IMG/VR virus record: IMGVR_UViG_3300035698_035366
Coordinates: 62,001-126,000 of that record
Length of the DNA stretch: 64,000 bases
Reading direction: 5' to 3' (one strand)
A program made the position numbers and the translations under genes. Shown here one piece after another: positions 16,405-63,426 of this stretch; position 1 is the first letter of the stretch, and each line of letters opens with the position of its first letter. The notes beneath the pieces were generated by a model that worked only from the letters and a program-made list of their open reading frames with translations, had not been told where the DNA came from and made no database searches.

Positions 16405-17640
16405 ATGACTAAACTTTTTGAATCACAGTGGAAGAAGACAAAGTCCGCTCTTTGCGAAGGCAGAGATTTAGAATTTAACCAGGATGGTTCCCGTAACGAA
16501 ACTAAGAAAGCAGTTATGGAAACAATTTTGGAAAACACACACAGAGAAATGACCCGTCTGGGTCAGATGCCTTTGATGGAAACAGCAACAGCGGGATCAT
16601 CTTCTGCTGGTAATATTGCTACTCTAAACAAGGTTATTCTACCAGTTATCCGTCGTGTTATGCCAACCGTTATTGCTAACGAAATTATTGGTGTTCAACC
16701 AATGACAGGACCAGTAGCTCAGATTCATACACTTCGCGTTCGCTACGGCGACACTGTTCCATCACTAGGTGGCGGTGTAACAGCAGGTAACGAAGCACTA
16801 TCACCATTTGATATCGCTCGTTATTACTCAGGTAATGAAGATGTAACAACTCCACTAGCTGCTCCTACAGCACGTCTAGAAGGTGTTCCAGGCAACCGCT
16901 TGAACATTGAAATCCTAAAGGAAGTTGTTGAAGCTAAGACACGTCGTCTATCCGCACGTTGGACCTTTGAGGCTCAGCAGGATGCACAGGCACAGCAGGG
17001 CATCGACATTGAAGCAGAAATTCTTGCAGCATTAGCTCAGGAAATTACCGCTGAAATTGACCAGGAAATTCTTGGTTCCCTACGTCGTCTACCAGGCGCA
17101 CCAACAATTACCTTTACACAGGGTACAGTTACAGGTACTCCAACATTCGTTGGTGACACCCACGCTGCCCTAGCAGTTCTAATCAACCAGCAGGCCAACC
17201 TAATCGCTGCACGTACACGTCGTGGCGCAGGTAACTGGGTTGTTGTTTCTCCAACTGCTCTAACCGTTCTACAGTCTGCTACAACATCAGCATTCGCACG
17301 TACAACTGAAGGTGTTTTCGAAGCACCAACAAACACAAAGTTCGTTGGTACTCTTAACTCTTCAATGCGCGTTTATGTTGATCAGTATGCAGATGATGCA
17401 ACCCCAGTCCTAGTTGGATATAAGGGTGATGGTGAAATTGATGCCGCAGCTTATTACTGCCCATATGTTCCACTAACATCTTCTGGTGTTGTTATTGATC
17501 CACAGACATTCGAGCCAGTCGTATCCTTCATGACACGTTATGGCTACCTAGAGCTAACCAACTCCGCTACCTCTCTTGGTAACGCTGCTGATTACCTAGG
17601 CCTAATCGGAATCGACACTGCAACTCTAAAGTTCCAGTAA
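16405..17640 (+). CDS. Major capsid protein (T4 gp23-like)
   Basis: IRRVMPTVIANEIIGVQPMTGP, AKTRRLSARWTFE, YCPYVPL, FMTRYG. Confidence 0.95.
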   Translation: MTKLFESQWKKTKSALCEGRDLEFNQDGSRNETKKAVMETILENTHREMTRLGQMPLMETATAGSSSAGNIATLNKVILPVIRRVMPTVIANEIIGVQPMTGPVAQIHTLRVRYGDTVPSLGGGVTAGNEALSPFDIARYYSGNEDVTTPLAAPTARLEGVPGNRLNIEILKEVVEAKTRRLSARWTFEAQQDAQAQQGIDIEAEILAALAQEITAEIDQEILGSLRRLPGAPTITFTQGTVTGTPTFVGDTHAALAVLINQQANLIAARTRRGAGNWVVVSPTALTVLQSATTSAFARTTEGVFEAPTNTKFVGTLNSSMRVYVDQYADDATPVLVGYKGDGEIDAAAYYCPYVPLTSSGVVIDPQTFEPVVSFMTRYGYLELTNSATSLGNAADYLGLIGIDTATLKFQ

Positions 17641-17667
17641 GATATACCGACGAAAGTCAAAAGAACG

Positions 17668-17696
17668 AACCCGGGGCTTTATGCCTCGGGTTTTTC
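17668..17696 (+). terminator. Intrinsic terminator after MCP
   Basis: AACCCGGGGC-TTTAT-GCCTCGGGTT followed by T run. Confidence 0.8.
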
Positions 17697-19334
17697 TTTA
17701 TTCCATACCCAAACATTATTGCCACAATCCCATATTCTATCATACCCAATTGTTTGCATATATTTCCATTCAGATAAGTCTGTTTTTGGTAATTTTTTCT
17801 TTTGATATTTATAACGTGATTCCCTGATTTCATAATTTCGTGTATATGAATATCCTGGAGATGTCATTTTTTTGAATTTGAATTTATTATGTTTGTACAC
17901 ATTACCATTACCGTATCTTAAATCAGCATATGATAATATAGTATCCGGATCATTATTCTTTATAAAATAATTTAATAACCTTGAAAATCCACCAGTAACA
18001 GTTGTTCCTTGCAAGGAAGTAAATCTAGTCAATTCCCATTCATATGATCTATCAAATCTGGATTTTGAAAATGATGCAACTGATACCAGTGAATCGTCAT
18101 ATACTAAACCAATGTTTATAAGCGAATTTATATGGCCCTGTATATGATTTTTATTATGAAATTTTTGAACATCAGAATTGGATAACTCATTTATGGAACA
18201 TTTTCTTGCCATCAATTTGTTGTTAAAAATTCCCAATTTAGCCGATATAACCGATTTAACAATATCTTGTTTTTGTTTCCATTCATCACTAAAAATTGTT
18301 ATAAGTCTGATTCCTTTATCATTACATTTTACAAATTTATCTTGATGGTATTTTGGATGTTTCGATGAACTTAATTCAGAATGCCAATACAAACCACAAT
18401 ATTCAATTGCAATATTATTATCTGGAATTAATATATCCAATTCATATGGATTAATTAATGATCTATCTCCTGACAATGCATTTACACCTAATGATTTTAC
18501 AAAATCAAATACTTCTAGTTCTTCTCTAGATTTATAAATTACAGGCGTAGGGTTGCATATTTTGCACTCGGGACGTCGACCATTATCAATATACGTGGAG
18601 AACGTATGATCACAACTTATACATTCAAAATCATAATATTTTTGATTTGAAACACCTTCATATAAATCAATTGGTGTTATAAACTTTATATTACAATTTT
18701 CTTTATAATATTCATTTAATTTTAGATATGAAATTCTTTTGAAATGCTCATTCGTATACAATTTTCTTCTAGTTGCTGCTGATTTCCTAGCTACAACTGG
18801 ATCCACCATTGGGTTTTTTTCAGTCAACCGTTTCATAACGTGGGGGAGATGGGCAGCATTTTCAACACCATATCTATCCATCATTGTTTGTTTATGTGTA
18901 GCTAGTTGTTTTTTTATATTATTCTGACTTGCGTAGAAAATCTGGTGTTGTTTTCGAGCATGTTCTGATTGCCCAGCGTTTTCTACACCATATTTTTCTA
19001 AATTTGTTTGATACCTTTTTTCATTAATTTGGTCCTTTTCTTCTTTGTTATATGATTGTTTGGACTGACTTACCTTTTCGGAGACCGTTTTTCTTGCGCA
19101 CTCGCATACACCAGTCCTACCGCAGAACTTATATCCTCTAACAATTGAATCGAATTTTTTCGTATTACCATTAACGCAAATGTTTAATCCTGGATAGATT
19201 TTATTATACACAAATTCTGCAAAAGGAGACGAGTTATCAAACGCAAGCCAATCCATTATTTCAGGATCTTTTTTCAAAAACCTTGAATAATGTTTTGGAT
19301 AATCGTCAATTGTCTTTAGTATTTTATCCCGCAT
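17679..19334 (-). CDS. Free-standing putative homing endonuclease
   Basis: Repeated xxKYGVEN, Zn-finger CxxC pairs, ELDILIP..IAIEYCGLYWH nuclease motif; very low GC. Confidence 0.7.
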   Translation of the reverse strand: MRDKILKTIDDYPKHYSRFLKKDPEIMDWLAFDNSSPFAEFVYNKIYPGLNICVNGNTKKFDSIVRGYKFCGRTGVCECARKTVSEKVSQSKQSYNKEEKDQINEKRYQTNLEKYGVENAGQSEHARKQHQIFYASQNNIKKQLATHKQTMMDRYGVENAAHLPHVMKRLTEKNPMVDPVVARKSAATRRKLYTNEHFKRISYLKLNEYYKENCNIKFITPIDLYEGVSNQKYYDFECISCDHTFSTYIDNGRRPECKICNPTPVIYKSREELEVFDFVKSLGVNALSGDRSLINPYELDILIPDNNIAIEYCGLYWHSELSSSKHPKYHQDKFVKCNDKGIRLITIFSDEWKQKQDIVKSVISAKLGIFNNKLMARKCSINELSNSDVQKFHNKNHIQGHINSLINIGLVYDDSLVSVASFSKSRFDRSYEWELTRFTSLQGTTVTGGFSRLLNYFIKNNDPDTILSYADLRYGNGNVYKHNKFKFKKMTSPGYSYTRNYEIRESRYKYQKKKLPKTDLSEWKYMQTIGYDRIWDCGNNVWVWNKEKPEA

Positions 19335-19440
19335 CGATGTGTCATCCTTTGAACCAGTTATATATTAAATATAGTGTATTTATATTAATAAATCAATAAA
19401 TAATATTGACTATTACTTGATCATTACTATAGAATATAAT

Positions 19441-19590
19441 ATGGATAATAAAAACGATAAAGAAATTAAAGTTACAATGTCAAAAACCCAAGTCTTGGCG
19501 AAGAATAGAGCATTAAGTGCTGACTGGACATTTGAAATTCTTCAAGATCTTCAAACCAATCAGGCCAATCCAAAGGAATGTTATGAGTAA
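19441..19590 (+). CDS. Array micro-ORF1 (49 aa), MCP fragment ~aa166-195 + repeat tag
   Basis: MDNKNDKEIKVTMSKTQVLAKNRALSADWTFEILQDLQTNQANPKECYE. Confidence 0.75.
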   Translation: MDNKNDKEIKVTMSKTQVLAKNRALSADWTFEILQDLQTNQANPKECYE

Positions 19591-19744
19591 TAAACCAGCA
19601 CAACCGCAAAATTGGATTTCGAATGATATTAATGTAGGACTCCATTTTCCAAGCAAGGGGATAGGAAAATTATCATTCAGGAACTCAAAAGAAATTTTAT
19701 TAAATATGACTAATAGAGCGGAACCAAAGGAATGTTATGAGTGA
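19583..19744 (+). CDS. Array micro-ORF2 (53 aa)
   Basis: MSNKPAQPQNW..NRAEPKECYE; ATG overlaps ORF1 stop. Confidence 0.7.
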   Translation: MSNKPAQPQNWISNDINVGLHFPSKGIGKLSFRNSKEILLNMTNRAEPKECYE

Positions 19745-19892
19745 CATAAAAAATAAAGAATATAACAAATTGATCTTTTCAGATATTATTAATGGTCAAA
19801 TTATGCATGAAACAAAGTTCATCAATATTAATAATTGGCAACTTCATAAATATCGAATTAATGAATGTAATCCAAAGGAATGCTATGAATAA
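19737..19892 (+). CDS. Array micro-ORF3 (51 aa)
   Basis: MSDIKNKEYNKLIF..INECNPKECYE. Confidence 0.7.
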   Translation: MSDIKNKEYNKLIFSDIINGQIMHETKFININNWQLHKYRINECNPKECYE

Positions 19893-20034
19893 AATAAAAC
19901 CATCAATCTTTAACGTTGAGGAAGAACTACGTGAAATATTAGCTGCTGAAATATCGCAGGAAATAGATCGGGAAATTATGGAAAAAATTTATAAAGAAAT
20001 GGAAAAAGCTAATCCAAAGGAGTGTTATGAGTGA
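19885..20034 (+). CDS. Array micro-ORF4 (49 aa), MCP fragment ~aa200-226 + tag
   Basis: MNKIKPSIFNVEEELREILAAEISQEIDREIMEKIYKEMEKANPKECYE. Confidence 0.72.
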   Translation: MNKIKPSIFNVEEELREILAAEISQEIDREIMEKIYKEMEKANPKECYE

Positions 20035-20197
20035 TATATATAACGAAATAGAAAATATAGTTCACGGTTTGGTGGGATATAAAGGAAAAATGAAATATGA
20101 ATCCGCCACTTTTTATTGCCCATATGTTCCATTAACATCATTTGGGGTTATAGATCAAACCGATAATTATGCTAATCCAAAGAATTGCTATGAATAA
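20027..20197 (+). CDS. Array micro-ORF5 (56 aa), MCP fragment ~aa336-366 + tag
   Basis: MSDIYNEIENIVHGLVGYKGKMKYESATFYCPYVPLTSFGVIDQTDNYANPKNCYE. Confidence 0.78.
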   Translation: MSDIYNEIENIVHGLVGYKGKMKYESATFYCPYVPLTSFGVIDQTDNYANPKNCYE

Positions 20198-20360
20198 TTC
20201 AAATAATTCAAATAATCCTAATCAGGTATTGTTACCAATAATTCGAAGAATTATGCCTAATCTAATTGCTAATGAAATTATCGGAGTTCAACCAATGACA
20301 GGGGAAACGGGGGCGATTTTCACAGGTAATAGAGCAAATCCAAAGCATTGTTATGAATAA
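20190..20360 (+). CDS. Array micro-ORF6 (56 aa), MCP fragment ~aa75-109 + tag
   Basis: MNNSNNSNNPNQVLLPIIRRIMPNLIANEIIGVQPMTGETGAIFTGNRANPKHCYE. Confidence 0.8.
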   Translation: MNNSNNSNNPNQVLLPIIRRIMPNLIANEIIGVQPMTGETGAIFTGNRANPKHCYE

Positions 20361-20511
20361 ATTTAAAAAACAGGTTGAAATTTTAGAAGAAGCACAACAC
20401 GTTTTTCTTAAATTATCACCGTGGACAAAAAACCTTAGCGAGTTGCAAATGGATATTAATTATATCCTAGATAAAGTTGAGCAATGTAACCCTAAAAATA
20501 GTTACGAATAA
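20353..20511 (+). CDS. Array micro-ORF7 (52 aa)
   Basis: MNKFKKQVEILEE..KVEQCNPKNSYE. Confidence 0.7.
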   Translation: MNKFKKQVEILEEAQHVFLKLSPWTKNLSELQMDINYILDKVEQCNPKNSYE

Positions 20512-20557
20512 ACTATTACTATTATCTACCTATCAATGGTGTAAGTATTAATGAACA

Positions 20558-21109
20558 TTGTGGGTTGGTAATATGCAAAAAGTTTTTAAACAGGATGCGC
20601 AAATTTATAAAAGAGGTGAAACTTATCATTTCAAATGGATAGTGAAGAACCTTACTGAACATCGTATACCATTAAAGCCAGGCATGGTTTTATTGGATGA
20701 AAATCGCCCTAGTGTTCATCCAAGATTTCGCCCAATCGAATGGAATGCAGTTGAGGCAATTGAGCCAAAAGAAACAATCATTATATTGGATCAAGAATTG
20801 TATCCAGATAGAGTCGATAATTACCGTTTCAATTTTGAAGCATACAATACTATTGGAATTGGGGATATCTGGCATCAGTGTTATTACATCACTGAAAAAC
20901 AACGCAAAAATATCGTTAAAAAGCTAAACGAGCTAAGTGATAGAGAGTTACCGCAAGCTTGGTATCTTACAAAGAATGACACTGATAAACAGTTAAATGC
21001 CGCATTAGCCGGAAATGGAATGAAATCAATTATAGAGATATATATGGAAGAAGGATTTAATCCAGATCCAATAAATAAACCAAATAGTGTTACGCTCGAC
21101 AAACTGTAA
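20558..21109 (+). CDS. Hypothetical protein
   Basis: 183-aa ORF right after the array. Confidence 0.6.
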   Translation: MWVGNMQKVFKQDAQIYKRGETYHFKWIVKNLTEHRIPLKPGMVLLDENRPSVHPRFRPIEWNAVEAIEPKETIIILDQELYPDRVDNYRFNFEAYNTIGIGDIWHQCYYITEKQRKNIVKKLNELSDRELPQAWYLTKNDTDKQLNAALAGNGMKSIIEIYMEEGFNPDPINKPNSVTLDKL

Positions 21110-21182
21110 ACTCTCCCCAAGTTACAATTTCCCCGAGCCACTTCTCCCGGTACGCTAAATACTAGCATATCGGGAGTTTTTT

Positions 21183-21884
21183 ATGAGATACGATGAATTA
21201 TTAGAAGTCACAGATGAATATGAAATGGAGCAAGCAATTGCGGCTGCTCGAAAAATTCGTCAGGATTGTGAGCATTATCTACGAAGTAAAAGTGTTGGAT
21301 CAAATCTTGTAAGGGGTGACAATTATACTGAGCAGAAATATACAGTATGGGATCAGGACTTTACACAATTTAGAAACCGGGATAGAATTTATAGTTCAAC
21401 CCATGTATCTCAAATAGTTCACGATTATTTAGATTCAAATGGATTTAAAGCTACCCGCCTTAGAGGGAAATTTTGTTATAAAACAAAAAACTCAACTCCA
21501 ACATTGGCAACCAATTGGTTTGGTAAAGCATTTGTGTGTTTCCCAGTCGGAAATGATTGGGATATCATGTATATAGATGAGAAAGAATCAAAGAAGATTG
21601 GATTTAAAGGCGGGGATTATGGCGGTGACTATTTGGTAGGAAAGGCATCCGACATAATGGATCGGGAAGCAGATGACGATATATCATATGACCACTCTTT
21701 AGAAGAAATAATGAAATGGTTCTTAGATCGTCATGGTAATATATTCAAACATAGCAAAAGTGCCAATGATGTTCCGAATCAACATGAATGTGTGTTGTAT
21801 GCACCAAATGTTCATATGTTAAATGCAAATTTGTTGGTACATAATCCAAATTTACTAAAGATATTATATAAAGGAATTTCTTAA
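21183..21884 (+). CDS. Hypothetical, probable virion protein
   Basis: MRYDELLE N-terminus; GCTAAATA at 21154. Confidence 0.55.
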   Translation: MRYDELLEVTDEYEMEQAIAAARKIRQDCEHYLRSKSVGSNLVRGDNYTEQKYTVWDQDFTQFRNRDRIYSSTHVSQIVHDYLDSNGFKATRLRGKFCYKTKNSTPTLATNWFGKAFVCFPVGNDWDIMYIDEKESKKIGFKGGDYGGDYLVGKASDIMDREADDDISYDHSLEEIMKWFLDRHGNIFKHSKSANDVPNQHECVLYAPNVHMLNANLLVHNPNLLKILYKGIS

Positions 21885-31897: not shown

Positions 31898-32263
31898 ATG
31901 GGTAATCGTCTAACAGCCATGCAATGGTCAAAAATCAAAAAAGATTTTCCGGAAATTGCTAAATCAGCAACAAAGGTTATTCTTGATTTTGAAAGCCGTA
32001 TTTTTAAGATTCATTATCGACGGTTTAAGAAATTGAAAAACAAAACACCGGATGGAAAATCCGGTATAATTAATGACACAATGCTTGAAATTATGGATTG
32101 GTGCGAAGAAGTGTTGGATGGTGACTTTTATATCACTGCCTCATCAAACAGCCCATTAACAAGTGAGCGACGTTCAGCAACCTTTTATTTTGCTGAAGAT
32201 AGTGATGCAACCTTGTTTACACTAACCTGGTTGAATAGTAAGGGTATTGTCGATAGCAAGTAG
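31898..32263 (+). CDS. Hypothetical, motif family
   Basis: FYFAEDSDATLFTLTW. Confidence 0.6.
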   Translation: MGNRLTAMQWSKIKKDFPEIAKSATKVILDFESRIFKIHYRRFKKLKNKTPDGKSGIINDTMLEIMDWCEEVLDGDFYITASSNSPLTSERRSATFYFAEDSDATLFTLTWLNSKGIVDSK

Positions 32264-61911: not shown

Positions 61912-63426
61912 ATGCCTTTAGTTAATGATTTACTGTCTTTTGCTTTTAGTGGACAAAATCCGTTTGAAGATAGGATGCTACGTGATAGTAGACATGCACG
62001 TCACCGCTTTGAAACAAGAGATGCACAAACAGAACAAGATTTTGGTGGACGACCAAAACCAAAATTCCTGTTTGGTGTGCGATTCATAACTCAGTTCAAT
62101 TCACCGGCCTTTGGACAATTTTCTGACCAAAATGGCGACGTCGCTTTTATGGTTAAAACTGTTGATAAACCAAAAATTGATTTTGACGTCACAGTTATGA
62201 ATCAATATAATAAGCGTAGATTAGTTCAAACAAAAATAAAATATCAACCAATTAATATGCGTTTTTATGATTCAGTAGATGAAAGACTATCAAAATTTAT
62301 ATTATCATACATGCAGCATTACTATGGTGATCATTTAGCAGAAAATGTTGATCAATGGAGTTATGATAAAATTTCTTCAGAATTCAATAATGGTGTAGAT
62401 GGTTGGGGTTACAGAGGTATTTCCCAACCAGGCCGCTCAAATTCTGCCCCTTTCATGTCACATATTGAACTTTATCAATTCTTTGGTGGTAATTTTTCTC
62501 GTTGGGTTTTTGTTAACCCATTGATTACTAGCTTTGATCATGATAATGTTGATGCAGAATCGGGCAATGTTGCACAAGAAGCAAGTATGTCAGTCGAATT
62601 TGAAGGACTTCTTTATAGAGAAAAAAATATCCCATTAGCAACATCTAAAGTTGGTCGCGCAGCAATTGATTTCTTCAAGCTAGAAGAGTTCGCTGATAAT
62701 TTAGAATTACCTGATGCACTACAAATCGGCGGTTTAAATCTCGGTGGTATTAGTGATCTTGCATCGGCTAGATCAGTTTTTGGTCGAGAACTTGGTAGGA
62801 AAACAATCGAAGTTTTGAGCGGTAGCCCAATCGATACATCAGGCATTTCTAGAACATCATCATCGGCATTAACACCGTTTGGTAACTTTGATTTTGGTTC
62901 AGTTATTGTTGGTGAAGGTGTTGATGGATTAATTAGTAGCGGTGTAAGTGGATCGACAGGTGCGGTTTCAAACGCCATTAGAGCTGGTACTGCAAACGTT
63001 GCACGTGATGCTCTTAACTTGGTTAGAGGTAATATTCTTGGAACAGGTGGTACTCGACTCAATGACGGCGCTGCCTCGTTTTGTGCTGACCCAGCAACAG
63101 GATCTGGGACTTCACCGTCCGCATCCCCGGCAGGTGCCGCCAAAGCTGTTGGTCAAACAGGTGGGTTTTCCACACCAGGAGTAGCAGCAGATGAAAATTC
63201 AGCAGTTGTACAGTTTGCAGGAGCGGTGACAACTGGTGTTGATACAGTGGTCAAAGGGGTTGGTGATGGTTTACAGTTTGGATTAGAGACCATCGGGCTT
63301 AGAAATTCCCAATCTACTACAGGAAACCAAATTGGAGTAACAGCTAAACCATTTGTTGACCCAGATTCATTAACGCCTTCACAACGGGCTATTCGGGCAC
63401 AAAACCAATTTCCGGATAACACCTGA
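61912..63426 (+). CDS. Baseplate tail-tube cap/initiator (gp48/gp54-like)
   Basis: VKTVDKPKI, NQYNKRRLVQTKIKYQPI.MRFYDS; follows tube gene. Confidence 0.6.
   Translation: MPLVNDLLSFAFSGQNPFEDRMLRDSRHARHRFETRDAQTEQDFGGRPKPKFLFGVRFITQFNSPAFGQFSDQNGDVAFMVKTVDKPKIDFDVTVMNQYNKRRLVQTKIKYQPINMRFYDSVDERLSKFILSYMQHYYGDHLAENVDQWSYDKISSEFNNGVDGWGYRGISQPGRSNSAPFMSHIELYQFFGGNFSRWVFVNPLITSFDHDNVDAESGNVAQEASMSVEFEGLLYREKNIPLATSKVGRAAIDFFKLEEFADNLELPDALQIGGLNLGGISDLASARSVFGRELGRKTIEVLSGSPIDTSGISRTSSSALTPFGNFDFGSVIVGEGVDGLISSGVSGSTGAVSNAIRAGTANVARDALNLVRGNILGTGGTRLNDGAASFCADPATGSGTSPSASPAGAAKAVGQTGGFSTPGVAADENSAVVQFAGAVTTGVDTVVKGVGDGLQFGLETIGLRNSQSTTGNQIGVTAKPFVDPDSLTPSQRAIRAQNQFPDNT

Follow-up and report, generated by a model that had tools for sequence, protein, structure and literature searches.

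A tandem array of tail-tagged micro-genes in a salt-lake jumbo phage includes a copy of the capsid-protein segment corresponding to the Gol region of phage T4

The window analysed here is a 64,000-nucleotide stretch (positions 62,001 to 126,000) of the 296-kb IMG/VR record IMGVR_UViG_3300035698_035366, a jumbo phage from salt-lake metagenomes. The resident major capsid protein gene (16405-17640, +; 411 aa, T4 gp23 family; Pfam Gp23 E 1.1e-92, PHROG 138 E 1.7e-96) is the only full-length Gp23-family gene of the record and represents the parent type of the segments discussed below, its residues 77-105 being the Gol-equivalent stretch. It is followed by a convergent gene for a Hef-like homing endonuclease (17679-19334, -; 551 aa; PHROG 3339, E 1.6e-109, with tblastn hits annotated as Hef-like homing endonucleases), which is an independent selfish insertion between the capsid gene and the array; it is only 33% identical to the endonuclease at the same site in a sister phage whose capsid protein is 97.8% identical. 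A hairpin followed by a T-run (17667-17693) lies between these two convergent genes and was the only terminator-like site found by our scan of 17500-21400. Upstream of the first micro-ORF there is a conserved promoter-like block (19395-19440, +) that reads AATAAATAATATTGACT, 18 nt, TAGAAT/TATAAT and then the ATG; it is the best sigma-70-like match in the region (10/12) and is identical in the sister phage within a stretch that is otherwise 69% identical, although its class, early or late, is ambiguous.

The array itself (19441-20511, +) consists of seven coupled micro-ORFs, each overlapping the next by 8 nt. Micro-ORF 1 (19441-19590, 49 aa, tail NPKECYE; start fixed by alignment with the sister unit B1) copies the capsid strand block before the spine helix (capsid residues about 166-199; Pfam Gp23 positions 128-166, E 1e-7). 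Micro-ORF 2 (19583-19744, 53 aa, tail EPKECYE) and micro-ORF 3 (19737-19892, 51 aa, tail NPKECYE) have bodies of unknown origin without Pfam or PHROG hits. Micro-ORF 4 (19885-20034, 49 aa, tail NPKECYE) copies the segment expected to be the capsid spine helix (capsid residues about 197-226; Gp23 positions 168-197, E 2.9e-6), and micro-ORF 5 (20027-20197, 56 aa, tail NPKNCYE) copies the YYCPYVPL block (capsid residues about 333-366; Gp23 positions 303-335, E 1.9e-9). Micro-ORF 6 (20190-20360, 56 aa), the subject of this work and hereafter ORF6, combines a Gol-like module (residues 10-45) with the tail NPKHCYE. Micro-ORF 7 (20353-20511, 52 aa), the last unit, has an unknown body and the tail NPKNSYE, encoded as TAC GAA TAA at its end with no overlapping ATG; its orthologue B8 gives a dN/dS of 0.35. 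A tblastn search with all the units against the phage's own genome gave no parent for units 2, 3 and 7, and unit 7 returned nothing from GenBank phages. The operon is closed, in this phage lineage only, by a conserved 178-aa gene of unknown function (ORF178; 20573-21109, +), homologues of which follow the arrays of the two sister phages (contigs L008 and L009) at 77-78% identity with a dN/dS of about 0.1 at dS 1.2-1.5; it has no Pfam or PHROG hit, and its AF2 model (pLDDT 38) was too poor for a fold search. An intrinsic terminator follows (21144-21182, +), with a hairpin at 21144-21176 and U6 (minimum free energy -18.8 kcal/mol, z -4.2, none of 200 shuffles folding as well).

The first-pass annotation had matched ORF6 to the T4 gp23 segment that binds EF-Tu and activates the Lit protease, and this observation is confirmed. 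The ATG at 20190 opens a 56-codon frame that ends with TAA at 20358-20360 and translates as MNNSNNSNNPNQVLLPIIRRIMPNLIANEIIGVQPMTGETGAIFTGNRANPKHCYE. The mechanical ORF call starts further upstream, at 20169 (63 aa), but it is the ATG at 20190 that overlaps the preceding stop and that is shared with the orthologues. Residues 10-45 match Pfam Gp23 (PF07068) at profile positions 4-39 (E 1.3e-11, 45 bits against a curated cut-off of 24.4) and also PHROG 138, major head protein (E 8e-13), and a six-frame search of the genome with the same Pfam model recovers this stretch (E 1e-11). As only 36 of about 376 model positions are represented, ORF6 is a fragment homologue and not a capsid protein. In a phmmer search of PDB chains ORF6 residues 14-45 aligned to T4 gp23 residues 95-126 (E 1.5e-4), while hits to designed 'Cake' propeller proteins in that search are repeat artefacts; the MAFFT placement agrees. 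The alignment to gp23 residues 94-122, which had been proposed in advance as the test of the match, was made with the T4 sequence from NC_000866, which reads AVMGMVRRAIPNLIAFDICGVQPMNSPTG exactly as given in the annotation. Over these 29 ungapped positions ORF6 shares 15 residues with T4, including RR, PNLIA, GVQPM and TG, and 21 with the resident capsid protein, while the resident capsid protein shares 12 with T4.

The array is neither a chance pattern nor an assembly artefact. The 24-nt tail repeat occurs 6 times within 3 mismatches against 0.02 expected, and the + strand of 19441-20511 is 99.7% covered by open frames of 34 or more codons, against a mean of 52% and a maximum of 88% in 1000 dinucleotide shuffles. 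Identical pieces of the array occur in contigs of four separate salt-lake runs, with no allele lacking the endonuclease or the array, and in other assemblies of the same phage recovered by our collection scans (L005, L020). The orthologues of ORF6 in the two sister phages (B7 and C3) give dN/dS of 0.25, 0.10 and 0.17 at dS of 0.9 to above 1.7, while the flanking core genes have dS of 0.35-0.44. These values, however, rest on about 50 codons each, in AT-rich sequence with saturated dS. The core IRR-MP-IA-VQPM-IF is invariant across A6 (this unit), B7 and C3. Only DNA runs were found to hold the phage, so that translation is inferred from frame conservation and not from expression data.

The tail, P-[KR]-x-C-Y-E-stop, which ORF6 shares with every other unit of the array, is constrained as a peptide and not as a ribosome-binding site. 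Over 30 units P is present in 29, K/R in 30, C in 28, Y in 30 and E in 30. The codons vary synonymously (CCA/CCT/CCG/CCC, AAA/AAG/AGG, TGT/TGC), the AAGGA Shine-Dalgarno-like sequence is absent from most sister units, terminal units keep Y-E as TAC GAA with no downstream ATG, and a solitary unit elsewhere in the genome keeps the tail before a promoter. The lack of AAGGA conservation in the sister arrays led us to drop the view of the tail as a mere Shine-Dalgarno/start cassette. We also dropped a CRISPR-like repeat-spacer array, as the units are coding and the tail is constrained as peptide, and programmed +1 frameshifting that would fuse the units, since the frames do rotate by +1 but each junction has its own ATG and no slippery site.

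Syntenic or related arrays occur in at least six other uncultured-phage contigs. Besides the syntenic arrays of the two sister phages, related arrays are found after a clamp-like gene and before a TGT/DpdA-like gene (contigs L019 and L032), between genes for GTP cyclohydrolase I and a phosphoribosyltransferase (L022), and after a methyltransferase gene, 3.3 kb from an Acb5 anti-CBASS homologue (L031). Every array holds at least one Gol-like unit and one holds three different ones; further tail-tagged relatives of ORF6 are P0009, P0095, P0165 and P0224. Exact-pattern scans of IMG/VR found only the same phage plus one false positive (L029), L021 was a false positive of the metagenome scan, a search for related loci with the endonuclease found only the same phage, and ESM Atlas gave no usable lead. 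No cultured phage among 50,697 records carries the tagged unit, and our literature searches found no description of such arrays, so that the family is, to our knowledge, previously undescribed.

The capsid-protein blocks copied in the array rank 1, 3, 4 and 5 in conservation, and units elsewhere match portal (PHROG 213, E 8e-7), prohead protease (PHROG 207, E 2.5e-4) and a fibre-like GxIRFN..YDGxxW motif seen in two unrelated arrays (PHROG 1325, E 5.6e-8 and 1.2e-5). About a third of the units nevertheless have bodies with no recognisable parent, and, because recognition is biased towards conserved motifs, the statement that the units copy the most conserved blocks is partly circular. The position of the four segments in the capsid fold could not be computed, as the AF2 model of the resident capsid protein (pLDDT 44) was also too poor to use.

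The Gol-like segment is moreover a portable module. Of the 150 best 50%-identity clusters, 51 join it to 45 or more residues of non-capsid C-terminal sequence, at least 22 of these 51 sharing a roughly 75-aa domain that has 33 or more paralogues in this phage; another 22 have the reverse order, and a further set of 81-95-aa proteins on 200-465-kb contigs joins the module to an acidic tail. Such free-standing modules of small accessory proteins (PHROG 12830, 128 aa, labelled 'major head protein', and clusters such as P0013, P0019, P0139 and P0197) are the nearest sequence relatives of ORF6 (26/33 identical, also with PNLIA and G-x-IF) and lie among small accessory genes. In these proteins the roughly 35-residue module is fused to the 75-aa domain, to an N-terminal W-G-x-FPS domain plus an acidic tail, or to other parts, but not to the P-[KR]-x-C-Y-E tail, and the genes are single rather than arrayed; none has a known function. 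In practical terms this shows that short Gp23-family hits in metagenomes are often not broken capsid genes, and that databases mislabel them as major head protein.

The interpretation offered in the first-pass annotation, that the difference between PNLIA in ORF6 and PTVIA in the phage's own capsid protein hints at a foreign capsid source, is only partly supported. ORF6 is not a recent copy of the resident capsid gene, as it lies in a 27-33% GC island next to a 40-49% GC capsid gene, and its orthologues in the two sister phages differ from it at 30-40% of residues, while the sister capsid proteins are 97.8% identical. However, PNLIA versus PTVIA is not a marker of a foreign capsid protein, since those two positions vary freely among the ORF6 orthologues (PSVIA, PAVIA, PKITA, PKTIA), and ORF6 is closer to the resident, Rak2-type capsid protein (21/29) than to T4 (15/29). 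The annotation had named strict clustering with the phage's own capsid protein as an outcome that would count against it; in our comparison, which rests on identity ranking and not on a tree of the 33-residue segment, the nearest relatives are not capsid proteins at all, so that the source is an old, separate lineage of free-standing Gol-like micro-genes and not a captured foreign capsid gene. EF-Tu binding (domains II-III, GDP form) and Lit activation are properties of the T4 peptide (PMC3014915) and remain a hypothesis for ORF6. Interaction with EF-Tu had likewise been listed as a check, and the single complex prediction of ORF6 with E. coli EF-Tu scored 0.00, which speaks neither for nor against binding; activation of a Lit-type zinc protease was not assayed, and retention of the 13 critical residues of the 20-residue Gol core found by scanning mutagenesis (PMC3014915) was not examined. 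The annotation also treated ORF6 in isolation and missed the shared tail and the wider family.

What the sequence analysis itself demonstrates is the homology, the array structure, its conservation, purifying selection on body and tail, and the portability of the Gol-like module, whereas expression as peptide, mimicry as the function, the identity of the target and the role of the tail are our inferences. On this basis we tentatively favour, without regarding it as more likely than not, the view that each peptide is a molecular mimic occupying the site on some cellular or viral factor that normally recognises the motif in the full-length virion protein. For the Gol-like unit the only experimentally known partners of the motif are EF-Tu and, through it, the Lit protease in T4-infected E. 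coli. The common tail would be the shared functional handle, which either turns a would-be activator into an antagonist or couples the bound factor to a common fate, and the array would then be a decoy library aimed at host sensors of conserved phage proteins. This view is plausible in that capsid and other core virion proteins, the kinds of protein copied by the units, are direct triggers of many bacterial immune sensors, EF-Tu taking part in two of them (PMC3014915; bioRxiv 10.64898/2026.01.04.697583), and in that phage proteins counteracting a sensor of a virion protein are known (PMC11087589). On the other hand, no partner or sensor is identified, the host is an unknown salt-lake bacterium, and blocking of a sensor was not measured. 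In T4 the free Gol peptide activates Lit (PMC3014915), and a plain mimic would therefore harm the phage unless the tail or the sequence changes make it an antagonist, which is conjecture. The location of this array in the head-morphogenesis module and its ambiguous promoter class fit an assembly role as well.

Such a morphogenesis role is the strongest of the alternatives, although we consider it unlikely. The peptides might act on the head and virion assembly of the phage itself or of a co-infecting phage, as incorporation signals inserting into the procapsid lattice or scaffold, as regulators or chaperone-like competitors of capsid-protein folding and polymerisation, or as dominant-negative interface peptides that poison a competitor's assembly. 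In this lineage the array lies directly after protease, scaffold and capsid genes, where T4 has gene 24 with segD in between; the bodies come from proteins that assemble together (capsid protein, portal, prohead protease and fibres); the conserved upstream block contains a T4-late-like TATAAATA, perfect in the sister phage; and the tail ends in Glu-COOH, as do the products of T4-type prohead proteases. These proteases cut after L/I-x-E, however, a consensus that C-Y-E does not fit, and four of the seven arrays lie among replication, nucleotide-metabolism or DNA-modification genes, far from any visible structural gene. The resident capsid protein carries the canonical motif, so a dominant-negative peptide would not spare the phage itself, and the units evolve much faster than the proteins they copy. 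Somewhat less likely still is that the units are selfish micro-cassettes spreading by recombination at the 21-24-nt tail/stop/start junction, open and coupled only so as not to be polar on downstream genes and with captured filler as bodies. Each unit does start and end at the same TATGA(R)T(R)A junction, unit numbers differ between sister phages (7, 8 and 3), arrays plug in exactly at the start codon of ordinary genes such as the phosphoribosyltransferase gene in L022, and they sit in variable, low-GC, endonuclease-rich regions. Against this, the tail is conserved as amino acids even where no downstream ORF uses the junction, the Gol-like body is under purifying selection with its capsid-like core retained in at least seven diverged arrays, and the same body types recur in unrelated arrays, which random filler would not do.

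Genomic debris, either decayed pieces of a second capsid-family gene (a gp24-like vertex gene) or leftovers of endonuclease-driven gene conversion next to the capsid gene, is suggested by the T4 gene 24 position of the array after gene 23 and an endonuclease gene, by the absence of a second full Gp23-family gene from this genome, by the adjacent Hef-like endonuclease, and by the small ORFs alt.-1 and alt.-2 that T4 itself carries, made by an old partial duplication of a virion-protein gene. This reading is very improbable and already largely refuted: the segments are not colinear with the capsid protein (profile positions 128-166, unknown, unknown, 168-197, 303-335, 4-39, unknown) and their order differs between arrays, all frames are open, dN/dS is below 1, and units also copy portal, protease and fibre motifs. 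Arrays also occur far from capsid genes and without Hef (no adjacent Hef in L022, L031 and L032), and the endonuclease alleles of the sister phages are 33% identical while the arrays are syntenic, so that the constant linkage and co-evolution expected of cargo of a homing-endonuclease cassette are not observed. About equally improbable is that the units are precursors of a ribosomally made, post-translationally modified product, with the tail as the recognition or modification site (for example for a Lys-Glu or Cys/Tyr cross-link) and the bodies as variable cores. The tandem short ORFs with one invariant short motif and hypervariable remainders, the reactive tail residues (K, C, Y and a terminal E) and the conserved ORF178 are consistent with this, but no radical-SAM, ATP-grasp, lanthipeptide-type or protease/transporter gene adjoins any array, the neighbours differ in every context, ORF178 has one cysteine, no family match and is absent from the other arrays, and cores that copy virion motifs are not expected of such precursors.

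A broader reading, which we regard as unlikely but which is not excluded, is that large phages carry expressed libraries of "pattern mimics", each copying one conserved motif of the core virion proteome (capsid Gol segment, spine helix, portal, prohead protease, fibre motif) and sharing the C-terminal handle, that together blunt the bacterial pattern-recognition receptors and Lit-type proteases sensing those proteins, the Gol-like segment being a general, portable EF-Tu or sensor-docking module reused in several accessory-protein architectures. Bacterial immunity is now known to sense the conserved core of the phage proteome, including capsid, portal and other core virion and replication proteins, and how phages with immutable structural motifs escape such sensing is largely open. 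A family of micro-genes that are literal copies of exactly those motifs, kept open and under selection and tagged with a common tail, would be a new class of viral counter-measure, and at the least it is a new class of viral microprotein. It would also give a direct experimental handle on why the Gol segment is the most conserved part of T4-type capsid proteins and on what, besides Lit, reads that segment.

Among the closest known systems is the Gol segment of T4 gp23, which works as a free 29-mer of about the size of the ORF6 body (PMC3014915); Gol is an internal stretch of a 521-aa structural protein, while ORF6 is a separate gene with its own start, tail and evolutionary lineage. With DSAD1, which counteracts DSR2, a sensor of the tail tube (PMC11087589), the concept is shared of a small phage protein counteracting the recognition of a conserved structural protein by an abortive-infection sensor; the candidate decoys described here are literal copies of short motifs, arrayed and with a shared tail. 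T4 alt.-1 and alt.-2 are short ORFs next to a virion-protein gene, made by an old partial duplication of that gene with a new stop and a new start, but they are a single colinear duplication with no common tail, do not recur across phages or genomic contexts and hold no mixture of motifs from several proteins. The silent or orphan cassette arrays of the vls and pilS antigenic-variation loci and the orphan toxin modules of Rhs/CDI loci have a similar architecture, with an expressed gene followed by partial copies separated by a conserved repeat, and here a nuclease gene that could start gene conversion also lies nearby. The units of our array are, by inference, individually translated and are tail-tagged, the repeat is not present in the capsid gene, and arrays also occur away from any capsid gene and mix motifs of several proteins. 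A role as gene-conversion donor cassettes for the capsid gene was dropped because of these other locations and of the low DNA identity to the resident gene, only capsid genes of other phages being recovered, at 77-80% over 70-79 nt.

The 296-kb IMG/VR record to which the window belongs represents an uncultured jumbo phage from salt-lake metagenomes, whose capsid gene is most like those of Sinorhizobium phage Phosso and the Rak2/GAP32/Serratia BF group. At positions 20190-20360 on the + strand there is an open 56-codon frame, ORF6, with the translation given in the first-pass annotation. Residues 10-45 of the product match Pfam Gp23 above the curated cut-off (45 bits against 24.4; model positions 4-39) and also match PHROG 138, while a search of solved structures aligned residues 14-45 with residues 95-126 of T4 gp23 (E 1.5e-4). 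The alignment to gp23 residues 94-122, which had been put forward in advance as a check of this assignment, was made with the T4 gene 23 sequence from NC_000866, in which these residues read exactly as given in the annotation. Over the 29 positions ORF6 shares 15 residues with T4 and 21 with the resident capsid protein (residues 77-105), whereas the resident protein shares 12 with T4. The observation that ORF6 corresponds to the T4 Gol-peptide region is therefore confirmed.

ORF6 is the sixth of seven micro-ORFs (19441-20511), each of which ends in N/E-P-K-x-C/S-Y-E-stop. Units 1 to 6 each overlap the ATG of the next unit by 8 nt (TATGA(R)T(R)A), so the frame advances by one at every junction. 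The chain of open frames covers 99.7% of the strand, compared to a mean of 52% in shuffled sequences, and none of 1000 shuffles reached the observed value. Four units exceed or approach the Gp23 cut-off, namely unit 1 (model positions 128-166), unit 4 (168-197), unit 5 (303-335) and unit 6 (4-39), and their order is not colinear with the capsid protein. These four blocks are among the five most conserved 25-residue windows of a ten-protein capsid panel; this result, however, is partly circular, since the panel was chosen by similarity to the Gol block and only conserved blocks can be recognised. Units 2, 3 and 7 have no recognisable parent.

The array lies in an island of 27-33% GC after the capsid gene, which has 40-49% GC. 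To the left of it a Hef-like homing endonuclease gene is located on the other strand (17679-19334, minus strand), and to the right there is a 178-codon gene of unknown function (20573-21109) followed by a strong intrinsic terminator. The order protease, scaffold, capsid, endonuclease (minus strand) and array mirrors the order 21, 22, 23, segD (minus strand) and 24 of T4. No gp24-like second full Gp23-family gene was found in the 296-kb record, which is 79% complete by CheckV; a database copy of the 178-codon gene lies on a 408-kb contig, so the full genome may be about 400 kb.

Identical pieces of the array occur in contigs of four separate runs. The 178-aa neighbour led us to two sister phages, represented by the loci L008 and L009. 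In L008 the protease, scaffold and capsid genes are 90% identical in DNA to those of the window, and the capsid protein is 97.8% identical, with a dS of 0.37. The endonuclease found at the same place in L008 (5185-6615, minus strand) is, in contrast, only 33% identical to that of the window and differs in length (476 against 551 aa), with only the first 60 or so residues well conserved, which looks like endonuclease turnover at a fixed site. It is followed by eight micro-ORFs and by the 178-aa gene at 77% identity (L008:8001-8537), while L009 has three units and the same 178-aa gene (L009:728-1264). Units 1, 4, 5, 6 and 7 have clear orthologues, which are far more diverged than the core genes. 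The ORF6 orthologues have dN/dS of 0.25, 0.10 and 0.17, while unit 7 gives 0.35, unit 1 gives 0.52 and unit 5 gives 0.6, although these estimates rest on about 50 codons each, with saturated dS. The ORF6 core I-R-R-x-M-P-x-x-I-A...V-Q-P-M...I-F and the last nine residues are invariant in the three orthologues. The 178-aa gene, which has no family match and yielded no usable AF2 model, is under strong purifying selection (dN/dS about 0.1), yet its dS of 1.2-1.5 is three times that of the core genes, and it accompanies the array only in this lineage.

In the window the tail contains AAGGA five bases before the next ATG, which could explain its conservation as a ribosome-binding cassette. The sister arrays argue against this, since Pro is encoded there by CCA, CCT, CCG and CCC, Lys/Arg by AAA, AAG and AGG, and Cys by TGT and TGC, and the AAGGA is mostly absent. 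The last units (unit 7 here and unit 8 in L008) encode Y-E as TAC GAA, with no ATG and no following ORF. A solitary eighth unit of 49 aa, located in the same genome outside the window (record positions 190283-190432, equal to L007:6284-6433), ends in DPKNCYE and lies just before a perfect TTGACA-17-TATAAT promoter and an RNA ligase gene (PF09414); its body has no recognisable parent. Over 30 units from six arrays and the solitary unit, the tail has P in 29/30, K/R in 30/30, then x (H, N, K, E or Q), C in 28/30, Y in 30/30 and E in 30/30. The tail N-P-K-N-C-Y-E vaguely resembles the capsid motif D-P-(K/Q)-(N/T)-F-(E/Q)-P (capsid residues about 360-366, window about 17482-17502; DPKNFQP in T4 gp23) that follows the YYCPYVPL block copied by unit 5. 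This could hint at the origin of the tail, but the resemblance may be due to chance because unit 5 keeps its own remnant of that motif before the tail. The data indicate that the tail is a peptide feature.

A two-tail DNA pattern and two profile searches found related arrays in other uncultured phages and in other genomic contexts. The arrays L019 and L032 lie between a clamp-like gene and a 549-aa TGT/DpdA-like gene. The array L022 lies between GTP cyclohydrolase I and a phosphoribosyltransferase gene, the start codon of which is the ATG inside the last tail. L031 and L028 come from a 211-kb contig, where the array lies after a methyltransferase gene. Every array has at least one Gol-like unit, and L031 has three different ones. 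The Gol-like unit of L019 (2904-3064) is broken by a one-base frameshift in an A-run (ATAAAAAACT), while its relative in L032 (916-1092) is intact; the break could be a sequencing error, a pseudogene or slippage. The other three capsid blocks recur as well, and further units copy other virion proteins: portal (PHROG 213, positions 460-499, E 8e-7), prohead protease (PHROG 207, E 2.5e-4), a GxIRFN..YDGxxW motif present in two unrelated arrays (PHROG 1325, E 5.6e-8 and 1.2e-5), and a weak structural or tail-fibre match (E about 1e-3). In 50,697 GenBank phage records ORF6 matches 1687 capsid genes (1689 places in all), but nothing covers 80% or more of the query, so the tagged unit is absent from cultured phages.

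The profile of the ORF6 orthologues has 1582 hits among 1.84 billion cluster representatives, and of the best 150 only 20 continue into capsid protein. Short proteins with a Gol-like N-terminal module followed by 45 or more residues of non-capsid sequence account for 51, and at least 22 of these 51 end in a recurring domain of roughly 75 aa (...F-x-F...[E/D]-x-D...F-x-L-[R/K/T]-W). The reverse order is found in 22, as in PHROG 12830, which is labelled 'major head protein'. A model built from the C-terminal 75 residues of the 22 proteins that end in the recurring domain finds 33 paralogues in the genome of our phage, none of which carries a Gol module (window 31898-32263 and at least 32 other ORFs, e.g. 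record positions 93188-96105, 148163-150889, 193159-196806 and 220479-221747). This domain has no Pfam or PHROG family, while in other uncultured phages members of the same domain family carry a Gol-like capsid module at the N- or C-terminus. A third architecture, W-(F)-G-x-FPS-(F/W)-DE at the N-terminus, then a Gol-like module and an acidic C-terminal tail, occurs in proteins of 81-95 aa, as complete genes on 200-465-kb contigs (proteins P0197, P0198, P0199, P0207, P0209 and P0223, on contigs of 137-465 kb), and one of these has an NCBI record as a hypothetical protein of a 'Gammaproteobacteria' MAG. Many short metagenomic ORFs (proteins P0002, P0003, P0137, P0200 and 51 of the 150 best profile hits) carry the capsid N-terminus and stop within 45 residues after GVQPM...LRxxY; some may be capsid genes interrupted there by an intron or endonuclease, and others may be contig ends or further free modules, and these possibilities were not sorted out. 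The nearest relatives of the ORF6 body (26/33 identical) are the free modules, which also read PNLIA and G-x-IF, while the resident capsid protein scores 23/33 and T4 scores 16/33.

The interpretation proposed in the first-pass annotation was partly supported. The homology to the Gol segment is correct. The suggestion of a foreign capsid source is half right: ORF6 is not a recent copy of the resident gene, as shown by its GC content, its saturated divergence and its orthologues elsewhere, but the lineage to which it belongs is one of free-standing modules and not of capsid genes. The PNLIA sequence, which had been contrasted with PTVIA of the phage's own protein, is not diagnostic, because orthologues read PSVIA, PAVIA, PKITA and PKTIA. 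EF-Tu binding and Lit activation are documented only for the T4 peptide, for which a 29-residue region suffices and binds EF-Tu domains II-III, Lit being an HEXXH zinc protease (PMC3014915). Interaction with EF-Tu had been named beforehand as a criterion, and our single complex prediction of ORF6 with E. coli EF-Tu gave no verdict and speaks neither for nor against binding.

Our analysis establishes that ORF6 belongs to a conserved, selected family of coupled micro-genes, that their bodies are copies of conserved virion-protein motifs, that their common tail is constrained as peptide, and that the Gol-like body is reused in several architectures. What these peptides do is our inference. In our view, which we hold only tentatively, they are mimics, each occupying whatever reads its motif in the full-length protein, and the tail is the shared functional handle. 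The most economical target class would be host sensors of the core phage proteome, since capsid and other core virion proteins are established triggers, EF-Tu is a component of both the Lit and the Avs7 pathways, and proteins that counteract a sensor of a virion protein are known. Because the free T4 Gol peptide activates Lit, a decoy would have to be an antagonist. The tail (Cys, often His, terminal Glu) could block a metalloprotease site, tether the peptides together or mark the bound partner for another fate, all of which is conjecture.

Among the alternatives, a role in head and virion assembly or in competition with co-infecting phages seems unlikely, although less so than the others; the local context supports it, while the arrays located among replication and nucleotide-metabolism genes do not. 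Somewhat less likely still is that the units are selfish coupled micro-cassettes with filler bodies, since the peptide-level constraint and the recurring body types argue against this. The timing of expression was not resolved by our data: the conserved block upstream of unit 1 contains both a sigma-70-like -35/-10 and a T4-late-like TATAAATA, and the third phage lacks the -35. We consider it very unlikely that the array is debris of a gp24-like gene or of endonuclease-driven conversion, because it is non-colinear, open, selected and found without Hef, and comparably unlikely that the units are precursors of modified peptides, because no enzyme gene is adjacent.

In the literature searched we found no description of such arrays, and we consider them to be a new kind of feature, the function of which is unproven. 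The closest known things, which are the T4 Gol segment, the unnamed free Gol modules, sensor-blocking anti-defence proteins, T4 alt.-1/alt.-2 and silent-cassette arrays, each share only one aspect with it. In a single instance an array was found in proximity to a known anti-defence gene, a homologue of Acb5 (anti-CBASS, PF26761) being located on the opposite strand (L031:539-751, minus strand) 3.3 kb upstream of the largest array, on the 211-kb phage contig.
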